Shown here: piece by piece, positions 5,249-58,843 of the stretch
Layout: each line of letters starts with the position of its first letter
Position numbering within the stretch: position 1 is the first letter of the stretch
Assembly (NCBI GenBank): GCA_038496445.1
Contig: JALMLS010000585.1
Location: forward strand, 372,001 to 436,000
Direction: 5' to 3'
DNA length: 64,000 nucleotides
From: Trichosphaerium sp. ATCC 40318
Taxonomy: Eukaryota; Protista; Tubulinea
Notes under the pieces: generated by a model
What the model saw: only the letters and a program-made list of their open reading frames with translations
What the model was told of the DNA's origin: nothing
Database searches by the model: none
Position numbers and translations under genes: made by a program

Positions 5249-6448
5249 AACTTTTTAGCTAAAACGCTCTACCACGCCACGTTAGCGTATATTCAACGTT
5301 TATTGTGTTAATAAGCGAGTTTGAGATAACTTGAGCATAATAAACGTCTAAATGTATCGAACTCTTTTAAATATGTACCTAAACAACGATATCTTATCCT
5401 TGATACACAGGCTCTCAAACCTAGCCGCACAGAAATAAAACAAATCCTTCACTTACATAGTCAACAGCAGTCTATTCACTTAGGTAGCAAAAAAAATTGC
5501 GTATTTGTTTAATATGTGTCAGTATGGAGGTTTTGTTTACCCGACTCAATAAATCCAATGAAAGTGCTTAACATTTGTAGATGCATCCACTAATTCGCTT
5601 TTGCACGTTGGTAGAAAACTCACATGTTTTGCATCCCACTACGCGCATAGAGTACTATTGTAATAATTTGAGCGCCAGCAGTGGAGTTTAAGCAAAAGGG
5701 GAAATAAGAACTTGTCAGCGAGTTTTCTGTGCTGCTTTATCCCACACGCGAGGTTTTTCAACGTTTATAGCTTACGTTAGATTGGACAACGTTGTCAATA
5801 TAAGGGAGACGCGCTTGGGAGGAAAGACGCTCAGTCTTTGGTGGCTCTAGCGTAGCCGCACGAGCGGATTTATTCTACATTTAAGAACACTCGTGTGAAT
5901 TGCAAATGTGTTTGAAGGAAAAATAAAGAAATAATTTTTACAAGAAAAAGAAAAAGGATTTTAGGGAGGGTGAGGGGATGTTTTGATTGCTACTCGCCAT
6001 TGTTGTTGTTGTTGCCTATTGTGTCCTTTGATATTGACAGTCTTGTTCAGTCCAACCAAACGCTTGAAATGTTCCACATCTTCATTCATAAGGTAGAAAA
6101 CTCGCACAAAAGTTTGTTTATCCTTTTCGGTTCTCTTGTGAAACTGGACATTGACACTAAGAGTATCTGATATCTGACAGTTTTCTTACAAATAAGGTGC
6201 CCAAGTTTCCTTTTTGAAACGTTTCTCAACTCGGAATTTTTCCAAACTTAAGTTAGGCCCTTAAAGCTATTGTTTTTTAACACCAGGCAAGAGCTTTGTA
6301 ATCAGTTTATACGTGCTCATAGACCTCTCATACTCAACAGTTCTTTTTGGTCATATCCACACTTAACAGCCTCATTTATCTGAATAACTGAAGCGTGGGC
6401 AAATATTTGGCTGGCGAAGAAAACAGCGAGTAAACAAAAAACAAAAAA

Positions 6449-7206
6449 TGTCCATGGTGAACAATCTCCGTGGTTTTCTTTGTACTATGCTGTGCAACAA
6501 TGGTAGCCTCACAAGGTTACATGGCCAAAGATGGAGACCCATTCAGTGGGCATACATGGGAGGCAAAAACAGCTAAAGAAAAGTTAAACACACTGTACTC
6601 TTCTATTGTCAGCGATACTGCGCCATTAGAGTGGTATAAAGCTGCACTGGTAGAAATTCTCGTAGAGAACATGAATACATCATTCGACGCCATTGCTGAT
6701 GATTTACCAAAACAAGGTACACACAATGCAAATACAACTTCAGCCTCAAACGATCATTTTCAAAAAGACAATCCCAACCAATCTACAATGTACCGTTTTA
6801 ACCTTGTGCACTAGGTCTTCTACAAACACGTAGAAAGAAACTTATTCATACAGTTGGTGGTATTGCTAAATGTCGTTGGGACAGTGTAGGAGCGCATAAC
6901 TACACTGGAATGTTCAAAGGAGCTGATTTTGCTCTTTGTCGGATGTCTACTGCTTTAAAACCTGGCCTTGTAGATTTCACACCTGCTTTGCGTATCAAAC
7001 TATTGGTTGACGGAATGCCTTCTGTCAATACTTTCGGAATGTACACTCTAGGAGGTCAGGATTCTTACAACTTCTTTAAACATGATCTCACAAACCATGT
7101 ACCAGTTCTTGGTACCTCAGGAAAGGCTGCTCTCCGCGCTCTTCTGAAGAGGTTCGAAATGGCTACCTTCGTAAATATTGACTCAAAAGGGAGTTCGCTT
7201 ACTTAA
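6449..7206 (+). pseudogene. Secreted catalase-like-fold protein, apparently frameshifted and truncated
   Basis: RKKLIHTVGGIAKCRW, YTGMFKGAD and NFFKHDLTNH resemble catalase-related proteins. ATG 6449 is out of frame with the signal-peptide-like VVFFVLCCA. No convincing C-terminal exon follows about 7170. Confidence 0.5.
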
Positions 7207-7391
7207 GGCTACACCTAAGGATTGGGACAAGTTGTTGCTTTCTCCATAAGAGTACAACCTTCTCACTCCTCCGCCTATAGCACCAAACTAGAAAACTGAT
7301 CGTTTACTACTGTCTTTTTTTGCTTAAATACTTTTCTGTGAAAAGTTGTTTTTAGTTCAATCCATTTTGTTACATCTTTGTTCCAGCCTGT

Positions 7392-8318
7392 ATGAGTACA
7401 AAACAATTTAAAGTGGTCATAGTCGGGCCTCCTGGAGTTGGAAAATCATCAGCAACTACCCAGTTCGTTTATAACCAATTCAGAAGCGATATAGACGCGA
7501 CAATAGAGGATTCGTACGGAAACACTCACCAATAAGTCCATAATCTAATCTGTAAGCTTATATACCTCTAGGTACCTGAGAAAAGCTACTATAGATGGAG
7601 AATCTGTTGAAATTGACATTCTCGACACACCCGGTTTTTCAGAGGCCAAACTACGTGATGCGGTACATACGCGTATTGAAACCCTTTCTGACACTCATCT
7701 AGTACATTCGCGATGGTGAAGGCTTTATTTTAATGTACAGCGTAACTGACTGAAAATCATTTGAAGAAATACAGAGTTTTTTTACTGCTATTTACCGGTA
7801 AGCAAGAGAATCCAGATGTAGAAGCTTTTTTTTTTCAATTTGACATTTTTTTGGTTTTTTTGAAATTTCGTAAAAATTGAGCCTTTTGAGGCTGCTCAGG
7901 TCCAAATGTTATTACAATTGTACACGCCAATATGCTTGGGATTTACAACGTTTAGTTTCCAGTTTGCAAAGAGCGTAAAGCCAAATATTTATGAAACAAA
8001 ACAAATCATTGCAGGCGCTACTTTTACATGCTAAATGGTTTTCATAGTGTAAAAGATTTAGATGATGATGGCTTGAATCCTATTATACTTGTCGGAAATA
8101 AAATAGATTTAAAACGAGATAGACAAGTAACCACTGAAGAAGGACAACAACTTGCAGAAGAACATAAGAGTGTATTTTTAGAATCATCTGCAAAAACATA
8201 TGTCAATGTAGATGAAATGTTTTATGAAGCTGTCAGAGAAATAAGAAAATACGAAGAAATACAAAACACTCCTACTGAACAACAAAAAAAAACAACAAAG
8301 CCATGTAAGGTGATGTAG
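7392..8318 (+). pseudogene. Ras-family small GTPase (copy A) with an in-frame TGA
   Basis: Four exons with GPPGVGKS, TIEDSY, DILDTPG, VGNKIDL, ESSAK and CAAX box CKVM. TGA at 7751-7753 lies in YSVTD*KSFEE, where the paralogue has Arg (AGA). Confidence 0.8.
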
Positions 8319-47384: not shown

Positions 47385-49768
47385 TCACAAAGGTTCTTGA
47401 AACTTACTATAATATTGGAACCCATATAGTATAAGAAGCATTGGTTGGCCTTAATAAAAAAATTAACAAAAGCATTATTACTTTGTCCATACTACAGCTC
47501 AAAAAAAAAGTTTGTTTGACAATTGAAGAATAAATCATTCATGTACAAAAAAAAGCATTATTGGGCTTACCAAATACACAAAATGTAAGCCAGAACATTA
47601 TATTTCCTGTTTGAGATCCTTTATAGTACATACTAAAGTTGTATGATAGTCAGGAGCAATAAAACTCTGAAAAGTAGAACAAAAAATGTAGGCCAAGTTT
47701 CAGACTTCGTACTCGCTAATGATTATGAACGGCACTTGGAAGAGCATCCCCAAGAAGAACCATGTATTCATTTTACCTAAGGGTACACTAACAAGCAACT
47801 TGTTATCAAAAGAATTAGTATGAAGAATTGACAACAGTATAATAAAACTAGGATGGTACCTCATGGAAAATCGCCGAAATTAAAAAAACAGAAAGGCTCG
47901 CAACCAATCGACTGTACCTGAGCAATCATAAGTACGACTACTAAACAACCTTCAACAATACCCTTTTTTAAGCATCATTTTAAACACATGGCGTCTGAGC
48001 CAGTGATGAACTGGTAAGTTCCATTTCTTCCTAAACGTGAAAAAAGTAAGAAAAATATCGAAAGGCAAACTCGTTTTGTCTGTGCGAATATGTTGATGAA
48101 TAATTATCATACCAGTACTCCCCCATTGTTGTACTATTCCACCAATCGCTGTAAAACATTCTATCACCAAAAAAGAGTAACTCTCCGAGTACATTCGGTA
48201 ATAAATGAAACAGGATATAAAACATCAGTAGCCAAGAGTAAACACTTGGAATCTTGAGAAAAAAAATAAGTCACGTGATCAACAACAATGAATGAAAGTA
48301 ATTGAACGTTAATAGTACCACTAATGTGAAGTAATCTTGTATGGCACTTGTATATTTTCTTTGATGTACGCTAGCAACACAATGTTCAATGGTTGGAAGC
48401 AAATATTGATGTGCCATAATCACAAGAAGAATTAAAAAGAACACCTAGAGGTTGACATTAACACGTGTCATAATATACATTGCTTACCAATTGAGCAACC
48501 TTACCAAGAAGCCATGACCTACGTAGAAAAAATAATAAGCCTCTTAAATGTCATTTCAAAATAAGAAGCTGCGAAATGTCACAATGTGTCACTCGACATT
48601 TGACAATTTGGTTTATTTAGACGTACCATCGTCTTTTTTTAACCATAGGAAATTTTTCCTGGTAAGTGAGTGTAGGCACAAGAAGAAAGTAAGCCAGATC
48701 TTAAGCATGTCAGACAATAAGAAACCAACAATTAAAAATAAAAAGACGTACTTTGCACAGTAATATTTTTGGGATATTCTGTAGGCTCATTCACAGGTTT
48801 CTTCTTATCTATCCAGTTAATTAAATATTTTCACAATACAAACACTTCCATACCTTGATACTCTCTCTTTAACCGTAGTTCACTATTAACCAAAACATAG
48901 CTACCAACAGATGTCAACAAAAAAGAAAGAAATTCAAAAAAACTCAAAAAAAGCAAAAGCTTTAAAGCCACGCGCTGCTACTATAACCGTTGTAAACAAA
49001 CGTGACTTTGAACAAGTATTGAAAATCTCGTTATATTTGTTGACAACAAAATAATACACCACGTGTTCAGGATATACCACCAAATGAAGAAGTTTTTCTT
49101 TTTTTTTCGTACCTTACTAATTTCATTTGCAAGACAACACAGTTTGAAATACAAAGAAAACTCGACAGTGGTAAGCATTTAGGATCTGCTTGATTTGATG
49201 CAGGACAAGTACGGGTTAATATGAGAATAACACTTAACGCTAGAGTGCATATAAAGTTCGTATAGTGAAGAAACATCCCAAATCTAAGCGAAACGGTTAT
49301 TTGTTAATTTTTGTCAAATTTCTCTTTTAAACGAACCCAGGATCGCATTGTTTTCGTGCCATAGCGCGTTCAATTGTATACGTAAGCACTAGACATACTG
49401 CAAGCACTATTTAAGTGAGATTGATTGGAATTTTTATCAATAAAGTCAGGATGTACCTCCAAACCCTTTAGATAGAACCATAGTATCGAAATACTGAAGA
49501 TAGTCGTTATTAATGAACACCAAGCCATATTTATCAATATTTTCAACTACCAACCGCATATTTGACCAAATCTACGCCAAACGTTAGCTTTCGCAAGGGT
49601 TAATGTCGTTCTGTAGCGTACGAGGATTATAGCGCATAGATTAATAAAACCTCTAAAGTTCTGTTTTTTAGAAGCGCTGGTGAGTAAGGAGGGGTCTGTC
49701 CGAGTATGAACAGGCTCGCTGTGTACCCATCGGTAAACTGACGTTTTAGAACTCTTTGTACTCTCCAT
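47385..49768 (-). CDS. DGAT1: Diacylglycerol O-acyltransferase 1 / sterol O-acyltransferase (MBOAT)
   Basis: SLLTS...NFRGFINL, FGDRMFYSDWWNS, WNLPVHHWLRRH, SAIFHE and GNIMFW motifs over many exons. Confidence 0.9.
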
Positions 49769-50102
49769 TACACAAAATGCGCGTATAAATAGCGTAAATG
49801 AGTATTTACAGGATGATCGAACTAGAATTGCAGGTGCAAATAAGCAACCTTCGCTTAAACCAAGCTTAAAAGTACTTGAATATGCTCATGGTGGGTAACG
49901 CTGATAACGGTTTTTCGATCACACTTCAGCCAACGCTTAAATAACTTAGAACTGAAGCTCTTATACACTATGCGTAAATAAAGTCATACAACTCCAATCG
50001 TAAGGCAATGTTAAAATTGTTTTATGATACAAGATAAATACAACTATTTTTTTTACATTTCATAGTTTTGTAGTAGAACATATGTTCTATGACTGTTTCT
50101 TG

Positions 50103-53100
50103 TTAAACAAGAGAAGTTCTAGAAGTAGCGTTTAATGCTGCACGAACTATAGGCATCACGTGTTTTGGTTTAGGTCGATCACTAAGAAAATGAAGTCAGC
50201 AACAGGGTTTCTGAGGCAGAAAAAAAAAAAAGACGTACGTTGCACCAAAGCTGTTTTGGACTGAAGGTGCGTTTGCCCATCCATATAAAGGTACTCCATT
50301 TTTATCGATAACATATACACCAGGTTGAACAACGTATTTTTCTCCAATAGGGTTCTGTCCAGTAAGATTTTTCTGTAGAGAGAAACCTCTACTTATTTCA
50401 TGACTATCATCACCAATCAAAGGAAAATTCAAGTTCCATTTCTCTTGTGTCTTTATCATCTTATTTGTAGATTGAGAGCTAATACCAACAATAGATCCTC
50501 CTTTAAATGCAACCTAATAACACAATCAATAAAAATCACGTGCACAAAATGGAGCAGAAAAAACAAAAAATAATCATACCTCAGCCATATATTTTCTCCA
50601 TGATCTTAGGTATCGTCTGCAAAATACACACCACGACCCTCTGAAGAAAATAAGTATAGTAAAACTCTTTGTTTCCATCTCTTCATCTAGCCATTTTTTT
50701 GCATTTGACAAGTCAAGAGTGCGTGTATAAGTATCAGCATCAAAGCTAGTTCTCGAAGTTCTAAAAAACAACAATAAGAAAAACAAAAATCACCAATTTT
50801 TGTGACGTACTCGAATCCTGAAATTCCTACTATACCATCCTCTATTACTACCTTTGAATGATCTATAGAATCAGAAGAAGACTCAGAAGATAGCATTGAG
50901 TTTGGTGCTACATCAAACTCTTGAAGTGCATGAAGGTTTATGCTACAAAACGAACTTAGAGTGCTCAACAGCTTGTCATGTTGTGGAGGAATATTAGCAG
51001 CAATAGCATCACTACATAGTACGTAAGTGTTAATACTCTATAGAGTGTTTGGCATTGTTTTAAAGCATACCTATTGTAAAGAACAAAGTTCCCTAGAGTC
51101 TGATTTGCTTGAACCAATTCTTTCTTTTTCAACTTTTTGGTTTTTTGCTCTACAGCTTGTGTGGATAAAACCTTTGCAACACCTGCCATTACACGTGATC
51201 TATGTTTTTGAACATAAATAGATACTTGCTCATTATCAAATTGTGCGCTATCTAGCTCCCCAGTAATTACACGCATAGCCATGCATATCGTTGAAATATG
51301 GCGACTTGTGTCCGTATTGAACGTTAACACTATCGAAAAATAAGCCAAAAACAAAAACGACAATGCCATCTTCAATACGTACTTGAAGAAGATCTACCCA
51401 TGTTGCCACCACCAACGCACATTAGACACACAATTGGCTGTTTCAGGTAAGTTAACAAGCCACGATGAACTAAGAATGATGTTGCTGCTTTTACGAACAG
51501 ACTTTTTGGAGCGCCTTGTTTACCAAATCTTGCCATTCCTCGTTGAACAATGGCTTGAAGGCCTTCAACTACAGAAGCAGGAAGAATATCAAGGATTGCC
51601 ATAAACTCGACAACAACTTCATCTAGCAAATCAACAAGCTCTCCTTTACCTTTTGAAATATGCTCTAAAGAAATGTTAAAAACAAGAATTTATTAAGAAA
51701 ATAATCCAAATAAACAAACAACGCACCAAGTGGCTTTTTAAAGCGATGAGCGACGCTCATTAATGACAACTTTATAGAAGCACTAAGTATAAGAGATGTT
51801 GTAGATGTTTCCGTAAGTATTAAAGTCCACACATCAACAGGCGGTGAACTAAGAGGGTATTACAAAAAAAGCTGAATATTTATACAAAAAACGTACTTGT
51901 ACACGTTCGTCAATACGTTGTTCATTTGACTTGCTCGTTTTGGTGCCTTCACTTTGTACTCAAACTTTAGTAGATACTTGTACATACGACGAATTGATTT
52001 ATCTCCACGAGAAGCAACAACTTTAACAAAACTGTCGATCATACTTTGAGAAGCATCAGGTGTAAATGAAAGAGCAACGCCTTTAATAAAATGACGATCA
52101 GACATAAGTCCATGTAATGCGCTAGCGCCCATTAAATGAGATCCTCTCCATTTATTTTTGTTTGGTTGCCTAAACATGTGTAAGTATTATTTTAATTACA
52201 GTCTCAAGCTTACCAAATAAATAGTCTGGAGGAATAGTCACCATCACCTTCTGTTACGAAGTAGACATATCCTCCGTCATCAATGTGAGTCCTTCTCACT
52301 CTTGCTTTTGTATGTATCATATCAAGAGGTTTCTTTGGTTCCTATAAGATGATTAGAGAAACAGTCTGGCGAGTGAAAGAACTCTCGCTTCAAAACAAAA
52401 AAATTCTAAGCAAAAAAAGCGAACCTTGACAAGCAAGTTGTAAACAGCAAGTCCTTCCTGTGTACCAACGAAAACAAAATTATCCATTAATGCAACACTC
52501 GACACTCTTGTTGATAGCTGTTGAAAAATATTTTGAGATGAATCCCCAAGGTTAGATTGTATTCCAGAGGCGATTGAATATGCTTTTGTATCTCCAAGAC
52601 CAAATACATGGATATTGCCATGTAAATCTCCAGCAATAACAACGCTCTTTAGTAAATGGACACTGGTGAGTGCTACTGGCGTTGGTTTACTGAAAATCAG
52701 TTTGGCAGTCTACAATAAAAGTAAACAAAACAATTCTCTGAATCATCAGTGTCGTTGACTCACGGTTTTGTCCCAACAATAAATTTCATCTCGAGTAACA
52801 CCAACGACAAGATTATTATTTTGTTTTAATGATATCCATCCTTTTGATGCATTTTCTGTTTCACAACTAGATAATGTTAACTGGAGCAATAATCCAAAAA
52901 AAGGGAAAAAAAAACAATACGATTTTCGTTTTGCGCTGGTTGAACAAGCTTACCTGAATAGCAAGTTATATGTCTTCACACAATAAGCTTCAATAATATT
53001 CATAGCAGATGAATAAGTTACAAGTGCATTTCCATTAACAACAGACGACAAATGACTGATAATTTTACCATGCTTGAAAATAGGTTCATTTTGTTCATCC

Positions 53101-53995
53101 TTTGAAACTTCGTTTCCTTTAAAATCAAGATGGAACACACTCCTAGAACCAAACACACATACACCCTATAAACAAATACACATGTTAGTTTCAAAAAAAA
53201 CCTTCACAGAATGAACTTACAGTCGGTTGAATGAAAACACCTTGAAGATAATCGTTTTCTCCAAAAATGGCATCGTAGCGGAATGTCTCATCTTCTTGAA
53301 CATCATGGATTTGTACGTTATGTATCAACGCATCGTCAGATCCATATGTATGGACAGATACAATATGAGTACCCTCAGCACGTATGATACGAACTTCGTG
53401 CTTGTTTTTAATATGACGTTGTTTCTTAAGCTGTGGGTGTGCTACTATTATATCCCTAAAGGTAAAAAGCGGACAATAAGAATCTAAGGATAGAAAACAG
53501 TTTTGGAGGTCAAGCCTCATTTAAACCTACCCAGTGTTCATATACGATGCAGCCATCCAACCTCGTGCACCAAATACTACTGTTTGGCGTTTGTTCGGTT
53601 TAGAATTGAGAAACGATGGAAGGACATCATTAAGGCCAAAGCTGATAGAGTGTCGTTAGAGAAAGTGTATTGTAGCGTACAAGATTAAACAACGAACCTG
53701 AGAACGTTTTTGTGAGCACGATAGCTTTTTTTCTTTTTCGTTTGTCGCTTCGAGAGCTAATACGTATAGCGTTAGTTGATGAAAATGCGTTGTAGTTGCA
53801 AAAACTACGAGTTTTAAAAAACCGCCAATTATACGTTCGTTTGCATTAAAATTCAAATTAGGAGCGGCCCCGAAACCTCAGAGGCTGTTTTTCACTTTTT
53901 GCGTTAGAAATATTCCAATTTTGTCTGTACAATTATTTACGCACTGAATCTGTCCTAGACACCCTTGTACTTGTTTCGGGACCACCTCTTGGCAT
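50103..53995 (-). CDS. Putative fusion: beta-propeller (WD40-like) + degenerate RasGAP-like domain + AhpC/TSA (peroxiredoxin-like) CxxC domain; start uncertain
   Basis: Consensus GT-AG introns link the propeller exons (IAGDLHGNIHVF, VFVGTQEGLAVY), the RasGAP-like helical exons and FFRGSWCVFCRRYL...QPGVYVID in one frame, with no intervening stop, poly(A) signal or intergenic gap. Confidence 0.65.
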
Positions 53996-54740
53996 TTTTT
54001 CTTAAAGGTGCTTGCAATATAAACAATAAACGTTGTGTAGGCGTTTTATAGCGTGATTTGTTACTTTTTGACAATAACTAATTTATAGGAGGCGTTGCCA
54101 ATTAGAAATTGCAGAATTTACACAAAGTGGACCAAATTGCGGAGGTGAAGTTTTTTTCCATCAATTCTATGTAGCATGCAAAGTATGAGCGTCTTAACAT
54201 GAGACAGTAGGCACCTTTGAAAAGAAATACTTCCGAGGAATGTTGGCTTATTTTTCAGAAAAACGGTTTTCAGTGCCAAGTCTTAGTAACATCGTCTTTT
54301 ATACACCATTATATTGTAGTACATTGAAGTTGCGGTTAAAATAATTTGCACGAGTCTAAAAAGTGTTCTACAATCACTACTCATATAATTTATGGCGCAT
54401 TGATCATAAATACAACTGAATTACGATAAACCCAAATGACACCATTTCGGACAAACGATTGTCCACCCTTCCTCATTAACTGAACGCAATTACTTCAACT
54501 TCATGCAACGTTATGTCAACTTATTGTTGTCACCTAAAAATATAGAACCATACTTTACCGTTAAGGATAAGTTTAAGAACTCTCAATCTTGTTTCAAGCT
54601 CACAACAAACGAAGAAAATTACAACTCTTTTTTTTTTTTTTTTTTTTTTTTAATGTCAGGTATGTACAATACAAGGCTTGTTTTACATTTAATTTTTTTT
54701 CTTTCTTTTTTAAACTGGTGTATCATGGTATATAGGCAAA

Positions 54741-56796: not shown

Positions 56797-57508
56797 ATGC
56801 GTCTTACACTTGTTTTCATCTTCTGTCTCTTTTATACTACACTTTTTGCTTGCGTTTGCCTTCGCAGAAGCGACGAGCAAAGGTTCTGCGATGCTGATGC
56901 TGTACTCAGAGTAAAGATTATTGTTAATTGGCGAACAACTGAAGACAGAAGAGTATTTCTAGCCGAAGTAAAGAGAGTTTATAAATACCCAACAGAGGAA
57001 CATGACCCATGGGTTAACATTGTCACAGGGTATCCGACTATTATCGTATTTCAAAAGCAGCTGTGTTCTTTCTAACAAACAATCACAGGAGAAGTTGGCT
57101 TACAGACTGCGGCTTTTACTTCGAAGAGCAAAAAGTTCGAATGAACAAAACCAAAATAGTTTTCTTACATGTCTTTAGGAGTATCTAATAGCTGGACGTT
57201 CTGATGCCTCTGAACAAGTTGCTTTCTATGTGAACAGATGCGATATGGACAATTTTTGTTCACCTCCTGCACCCAATGTTATTCGCCTCTGTGATAGGCC
57301 AGCTGGACCACCGCCATGTGTTGATTCTTGTCCAAACCAACTAATGTGCTCGTTTCCAACTTGCACATCTTGTTTGTTTATTCCAGGATCTTGTAATACA
57401 TGTGCTTCATCTAAATGCTGCACGAATGTCTTTTGTCCAGAAGTTGATACTTGTACCGAAGGCTGTGTTCCATCTAATTGTTGCGGAACGCAATGTGTAC
57501 CTGCTTGA
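56797..57508 (+). CDS. Secreted TIMP/NTR-domain protein with Cys-rich tail
   Basis: Signal peptide, then CVC...EQRFCDADAVLRVKI...DCGFYF...EYLIAG...VNRCD. Three exons. Confidence 0.75.
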
Positions 57509-57730: not shown

Positions 57731-58843
57731 ATGAACTCAAACAGCGCATTCTTTGATGAGATCCCTGTGGAAATCATTCTTCACATTCTACAGTATGTTT
57801 CTGTTTTATCTATGCCCGCAGTAGTGTATACATCCAAGATATTACGCAATGTCGCCGTACAGCTTTTGAAGTACGTCGACAGGAGAACTATAACAATAAG
57901 AACAAGGAAAGAACTAAAAAAACTATTCAAGAAAGCTCCACATCTAATATCGATACATACTATTAACCTTTGCTTTGTCATCACACAGAAAGACTTAAAG
58001 TATCTACAATGGGCTTACGCACTAATTCTGAAGGGAATAAAGCGAGTTGATTTTACAGGTTTTTTTGTAATTAATGGTATTGACTTTAGTAACTGTCACA
58101 AGACAACAACCGTGACTGATGATCATCTTAAACAACTTGCTGGCATTCACAATATTAATTTAACAAGCTGTCATCTTGTTACAGATGATGGTGTTAAGTC
58201 ATTGGCTGGTATTCATACAATTGCTTTACTCTATTGTGATACTATAACTGACAAAGGTGTGAAGGCTTTAGCAGGAGTTCATACTATTAGTTTATACTAT
58301 TGTGATAGAGTAACAAATTATGGTGTTAAAGCACTTGCTGGCGTTCATAAGATTGACTTAACCGGGTGTAACAAAATTGATGATGAGGGAATTAAGGCAT
58401 TGGCTGGTGTACATACCATTAATATTAATCACTTTTGTAAAGTTACAGATGATGCTATTAAAGCACTAGCAGGTGTTCATACTATTGACATAAGTAATTG
58501 TTATGCAATAACAGATGATGGTATTAAAGCATTAGCTGGAGTTTATAAAATTAACTTAAGCTTTTGTAATGTTACAGACGATGGTATTAAAGCACTTGCT
58601 GGAGTTCATACAATTGATTTAAGCTTTTGTGAAGGTGTAACAGATGATGGCGTTAAAGCACTTGCTGGAGTTCATGCGATTAACTTAGCTAATTGTAAAG
58701 GTGTAACAAGTGAAGGAATATTAGCTTTGGTTGGTGTGTTACACATCATCACATCTGTTACAAAAAACGGCCTTGAAGCTTTAGGTGATGTGTATATCGA
58801 CAACTGCCATTATGATCCTACCTTTTTGATATCTCACTACTGA
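57731..58843 (+). CDS. Intronless F-box + LRR protein (about 9 LAGVHTIxLxxCxxVTDDGVKA repeats)
   Basis: EIPVEIILHILQYV F-box followed by tandem 21-22-aa repeats. Confidence 0.9.
   Translation: MNSNSAFFDEIPVEIILHILQYVSVLSMPAVVYTSKILRNVAVQLLKYVDRRTITIRTRKELKKLFKKAPHLISIHTINLCFVITQKDLKYLQWAYALILKGIKRVDFTGFFVINGIDFSNCHKTTTVTDDHLKQLAGIHNINLTSCHLVTDDGVKSLAGIHTIALLYCDTITDKGVKALAGVHTISLYYCDRVTNYGVKALAGVHKIDLTGCNKIDDEGIKALAGVHTININHFCKVTDDAIKALAGVHTIDISNCYAITDDGIKALAGVYKINLSFCNVTDDGIKALAGVHTIDLSFCEGVTDDGVKALAGVHAINLANCKGVTSEGILALVGVLHIITSVTKNGLEALGDVYIDNCHYDPTFLISHY

Follow-up and report, generated by a model that had tools for sequence, protein, structure and literature searches.

In a 64,000-nucleotide (nt) stretch of Trichosphaerium sp. 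ATCC 40318 (contig JALMLS010000585.1, positions 372,001 to 436,000; the whole stretch is called the window, and all positions below refer to it), a minus-strand gene is expressed which we propose to be lineage-restricted and to encode a beta-rich head, a diverged middle related to Ras GTPase-activating proteins (RasGAP) but devoid of the arginine finger, and a CxxC redoxin tail. To this reading, with all its parts, we assign a probability of roughly 0.5. The gene is real and expressed and probably fused, and it would thereby join known folds in a new combination; literature searches on these domain combinations yielded no description of a RasGAP-redoxin fusion or of the three-domain architecture. 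A preliminary description of the locus, made from the sequence alone, had put forward a fusion of a propeller, a degenerate RasGAP and a peroxiredoxin-like domain.

The gene model was obtained by translating the minus-strand frames and placing GT..AG introns. It comprises 14 exons, and the frame is open from the ATG at 53556 to the TAA at 50103, which amounts to approximately 886 codons when the exon lengths are summed. All 13 introns are of the GT..AG type, measure 44–87 nt and bring the frame to the stop in phase 0; their donors are of the GTAAGT/GTACGT type. The acceptors (53530–50182) end in TAG in 13 of 13 introns and in CAG in none, which looks lineage-typical as a splice signature.

Expression is documented by spliced complementary DNA (cDNA) contigs with SMART adapter, which originate from two small runs of one sample. 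Contigs spanning 53631..51991 confirm the six introns at the 5′ end (53456–53530, 53166–53220, 52867–52953, 52710–52763, 52342–52424 and 52170–52213), the last of which bears out a junction predicted earlier at 52170–52214 and sets the true intron end at 52213. Exon 2 (53221..53455) has both flanking introns in spliced contigs, and exons 3 (52954..53165), 4 (52764..52866) and 6 (52214..52341) are defined by cDNA joints and translation. The contigs of this gene stop within exon 7 (51897..52169), which is covered to 51991 and whose donor GTACGT at 51896 is predicted. Exon 1 (53531..53631) contains a short 5′ untranslated region and the start codon at 53556–53554 (MAASYMNT..); a cDNA contig begins with its 5′ end at 53631, and the SMART adapter marks an end at 53550. 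The preliminary description had extended the gene to an ATG at 53995. This extension had to be abandoned, because none of the donors there is compatible in phase with the following exon, the frame is closed by a stop at 53658–53656 and the cDNA starts at 53631. Since the first in-frame ATG is the one at 53556, the coding sequence most likely covers 53556..50103 on the minus strand. Two out-of-frame ATGs (53630 and 53627) are located at the extreme 5′ end of the mRNA. Upstream of the gene, and unconnected with it, a separate cDNA contig of 341 nt (54017–54357) overlaps part of the territory in which a 5′ exon had been supposed.

The C-terminal tail is an AhpC/TSA family domain. Searches, scans and structure predictions, here and below, were run on single exons, which lowers their power. 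Exon 13 (50239..50513) contains the domain core and matches Pfam PF00578 (AhpC-TSA), scoring 35.4 bits where 26 are required (E 1.1e-8, profile positions 58–120), and its closest solved structure is the archaeal peroxiredoxin Bcp-4 (PDB 3hjp, E 2.7e-5). Exon 12 (50580..50760) carries the first part of the domain with FFRGSWCVFC, which was located at 50648–50619 as claimed, and matches positions 24–54 of the same profile, collinear with the exon 13 match across the intron 50579–50514. In addition, exon 12 is similar to a SelL-related redox protein in NCBIfam (E 0.0018) and resembles the WCxxC sites of thioredoxin and PDI in PDB. Exon 14 (50103..50181), defined by translation, adds the C-terminal end DRPKPKHVMPIVRAAL.. 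and the stop codon TAA at 50105–50103. The active site RGSWCVFC has Arg in place of the peroxiredoxin Pro and Cys in place of Thr, so that the PxxxTxxC pattern is not matched, and the conserved peroxiredoxin Arg is replaced as well (KRSVFVID of Bcp-4 aligns with QPGVYVID, i.e., KRS versus QPG). Because Pro, Thr and Arg are all replaced, the tail is a CxxC thiol-disulfide redoxin of the thioredoxin fold rather than a canonical peroxiredoxin or a peroxidase. Of the peroxiredoxin-like tail suggested previously, the AhpC/TSA CxxC domain is thus retained and the canonical peroxiredoxin is not. A word search for close relatives of 58–184 amino acids of the AhpC open frame found none, and a second WCxxC gene was not found in the 64,000 nt of the window.

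For the N-terminal domain of approximately 360 residues, which covers exons 2 to 6 and ends in exon 7, the indications are of a beta-rich structure, and a propeller is hinted at. Exon 5 (52425..52709), which is bounded by cDNA joints, gave the sole match to a propeller profile in Pfam (Beta-prop_WDR19_2nd, E 0.0035), whose 17 bits fall short of the required 27. Its WD-like strings (..VVIAGDLHGNIHVF..) make a propeller head plausible. An AlphaFold2 (AF2) model of exon 5 alone shows the beta strands of a meander; its predicted local distance difference test (pLDDT) value of 47 means low confidence. A possible collinear paralogue near 6400–7900, which came up when all exons were compared with the window by tblastn, was rejected, as the frames there are not coding.

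The helical middle begins in exon 7, continues through exons 8 (51727..51848, predicted GT..AG boundaries) and 9 (51383..51664) and ends in exon 10 (51071..51329) with a Lys-rich linker, the latter two exons being defined by translation. All strings in which a RasGAP pattern had been seen are present: FVKVVASRG...LLKFEY in exon 7, ILDILPASV...RF and the FLR-like SFLVHRGLLTYLKQP (51479–51435) in exon 9, and RHISTICMAMRVI in exon 10. Four motif-like stretches presumably follow the order and spacing of RasGAP. When p120GAP is aligned by eye, which gives a lead rather than a test, we take TSLILSAS..LM to resemble its TLFRATTLAS..LM with Leu replacing the finger Arg, ILPASV...ARFG to resemble ILPPTLR...KWP, SFLVHRGLLTYLKQP to retain F, R and P of FVFLRLICPAILNP, and SRHISTICMAMRVI to resemble ARTLILVAKSVQNL with Met replacing Lys. 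Under this alignment exon 8 reads TSLILSAS (51799–51776) at the place of the arginine finger, which agrees with the earlier statement that no Arg occurs there. Independent of motif spacing, from which the preliminary description had proposed the family, the same family was named for exon 9 by a protein-language-model look-up (Atlas): PF00616 (RasGAP) accounted for 24 of the 30 nearest clusters; the best score was 0.93, and the features in common numbered 195 of 256.

Several results weigh against a RasGAP-related middle. The recognition value of exon 9 in Atlas was 1975 and therefore below the tool's reliability line of 2300, which makes the high score weak evidence, and exon 10 had neither an Atlas neighbour nor a match in Pfam or PDB. 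PF00616 was not matched at E ≤ 1 when exons 7–10 were scanned with Pfam, and phmmer of single exons against PDB found no RasGAP. An exhaustive phmmer search with exon 9 among 1.84 billion representative proteins detected neither a RasGAP nor any recognizable relative; the three matches (two tetratricopeptide-repeat proteins and one low-complexity repeat protein) were rejected as spurious, and the protein of this genome itself was absent among them. Metagenome scans with exons 5 and 9 returned nothing. For exon 9 by itself, AF2 predicted helices at low confidence (pLDDT 57), and when this single-exon model was compared with PDB by Foldseek and with Atlas by shape, only unrelated proteins came up. 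Although SFLVHRGLLTYLKQP keeps F, R and P at the spacing of the FLR motif, about half of the positions of the PROSITE-type RasGAP signature differ there; this signature appears largely unmatched in the middle. Finally, finger and FLR motif are presumably closer together than in p120GAP, by about 27 residues. To the RasGAP pattern claimed earlier, the language-model neighbours of exon 9 lend independent but weak support, below the reliability line; every profile and sequence search remained insignificant.

Taken together, we consider RasGAP ancestry of the middle somewhat better than an even bet, and, if this ancestry and the alignment by eye hold, the domain is likely to be catalytically dead through loss of the arginine finger. 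The strongest competitor is a real fusion whose middle has nothing to do with RasGAP and would instead be a lineage-specific helical domain, e.g., a solenoid, resulting in a propeller-helical scaffold with a CxxC redoxin and without a link to Ras; helical solenoids often follow propellers in trafficking or scaffold proteins. That no alignment-based method detected a RasGAP, that exon 10 is without Atlas neighbours, that exon 9 fell under the reliability line and that the signature motif is mostly unmatched would all be expected in this case. On the other hand, the language-model look-up of exon 9 returned overwhelmingly RasGAP neighbours and a high count of shared features, and the four stretches presumably have the order and spacing of that family, so that we regard a middle unrelated to RasGAP as rather unlikely. 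Far less probable still is an active GAP, in which a residue elsewhere in the RasGAP-like domain would take over catalysis, or which would act on the unusual P-loop Ras paralogues nearby, with the redoxin domain as its regulator. The FLR-type Arg kept in SFLVHR and the presence of Ras-like genes with substitutions at positions 11 and 12 in the window fit such an activity, but the finger equivalent TSLILSAS contains no Arg, and the conserved Lys of the next helix appears as Met in the alignment by eye.

The remaining issue is whether the RasGAP-like middle and the redoxin tail belong to the same gene. They would be joined by a predicted intron of 59 nt (51070..51012, minus strand, GTATGC...ATGTAG), which, as the preliminary description had stated, connects ...GNFVLYN and DAIAAN... 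in frame through a split Ser codon. Exon 11 (50811..51011) encodes a Ser-rich linker and, again in agreement with that description, has its sole Met codon in mid-exon at 50896, with no ATG upstream of it. The 38 codons preceding this Met are free of stops, for which the chance is approximately 0.10 at the 0.0575 stops per codon of the window, and lie in exactly the frame which exon 10 delivers. Further, they score +0.25 bit per codon with a codon table derived from the remaining exons, compared to −0.7 in the other two frames; known exons range from −0.07 to +0.36 when left out one at a time, and introns average −0.44. Because the frame fits, no ATG precedes 50896 and the codon usage before that Met is exon-like, the sequence logic for use of the 51012–51070 splice is strong. 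Against it stands that cDNA coverage in the two runs of the one sample is missing from 51990 to 50083, including this junction. The same gap in RNA leaves room for two adjacent genes, namely a propeller-helical gene ending in the unspliced 51070–51012 stretch (stop at 50968–50966) and a redoxin gene starting with the ATG at 50896. Such tight packing would suit the very compact genome, in which the cDNA 5′ end of the next gene downstream (approx. 49823–49921) is separated from the stop codon of the present gene by only about 180–280 nt. However, two genes would have to fit a 3′ untranslated region, a promoter and a 5′ untranslated region into the approximately 70 nt between the stop at 50968 and the ATG at 50896, the open and exon-like 38 codons in the frame set by exon 10 would remain unaccounted for, and the ends of the 51070–51012 intron are canonical, like those of the confirmed introns. 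We therefore consider two genes improbable; the best gene model is a single fused reading frame, and the fusion is very probably real.

With the fused three-part protein as the preferred reading, a mode of action can be outlined. The beta-rich N-terminal domain of some 360 residues, probably a propeller, would serve in localization or in the binding of partners. The all-helical middle of approximately 300 residues, as a very diverged RasGAP-related domain which has lost its arginine finger, would bind a GTP-loaded protein of the Ras family without speeding up hydrolysis, in the manner of IQGAP-type GAP-related domains. After the Ser/Lys-rich linker, the thioredoxin-fold AhpC/TSA CxxC domain may either sense the thiol redox state or act on cysteines of bound partners. 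That thiol redox state and Ras binding are coupled, making this a “redox-gated Ras regulator” as first suggested, is a guess on our part. The data show expression, the exon structure of the 5′ half, the continuity of the frame and the AhpC/TSA identity of the tail; the splice at 51012–51070, the RasGAP ancestry and catalytic inactivity of the middle and the coupling to redox state are inferred. The most far-reaching version appears doubtful to us, namely that pseudo-RasGAP scaffolds with a built-in CxxC redoxin form a family specific to a lineage of amoebozoans, in which binding of Ras-GTP, perhaps of the nearby P-loop-variant paralogues, would be redox-coupled or in which the redoxin would have cysteines of the bound GTPase as its target.

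Among known systems, the GAP-related domains of IQGAP type (that of IQGAP1, and Dictyostelium DGAP1/GAPA) lack an arginine finger and bind GTPases without stimulating hydrolysis. The middle of the present protein would share with them a RasGAP-like helical fold without the catalytic finger. Unlike them, the protein has no CH, IQ or RasGAP_C modules, PF00616 scores nothing at the level of exons, and the middle lies between a beta-rich head and a redoxin tail. Plexins (Sema propeller) and Dictyostelium RGBARG (RCC1 propeller) combine a propeller with a RasGAP-type domain. These proteins differ in being much larger and in containing transmembrane/PSI/IPT or RhoGEF/BAR modules and catalytically competent GAP domains, and they are not known to have a redoxin domain. 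NHLRC2, with a Trx-like domain and an NHL beta-propeller (PMC6107167), unites a thioredoxin-fold domain and a beta-propeller in one eukaryotic polypeptide, as the present protein may do, but its domain order is opposite, a helical GAP-like middle is missing and no sequence similarity was detected. With the PRX_like2 and SelL-related CxxC members of AhpC/TSA (PF00578; NCBIfam NF040769), the tail has in common the thioredoxin fold and WCxxC replacing the TxxC of peroxiredoxins, whereas here it is the last domain of an approximately 886-residue protein.

What is known of redox control of Ras is mainly chemistry that takes place directly on cysteines of the GTPase. If the reading given here is true, a protein which joins a GAP-dead Ras-binding module to a thiol-redox module would offer a genetically tractable handle on the link between Ras and redox state in a phagocytic amoeba. 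Should the link to Ras not hold, the expressed protein with its three domains is still a candidate for a new family, as its helical exon has no recognizable relative among 1.84 billion representatives.

Further features were observed in the window. It was correctly described before as encoding Ras proteins with altered P-loops: two Ras-like genes are present, one with GPPGVGKS at approximately 7425 on the plus strand, where positions 11 and 12 are both Pro, and one with GGTGVGKS at approximately 14236 on the minus strand, which has Thr at position 12. Substitutions at position 12 in Ras generally block GAP-stimulated hydrolysis. The minus-strand gene downstream of the one studied here (49600–49921) is supported by cDNA, with an intron of 74 nt (49653–49726) and an adapter-tagged 5′ end at approximately 49823. 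On the plus strand, a single-exon open reading frame of 370 codons (57731–58840) has an F-box-like start followed by about 12 tandem leucine-rich repeats (..GVKALAGVHTI..); its exact protein has no record in the public gene-position index. Directly upstream of it, on the same strand, lies a Cys/Pro-rich open frame at 57179–57505 (..CPNQLMCSFPTCTSC..CCGTQCVPA).

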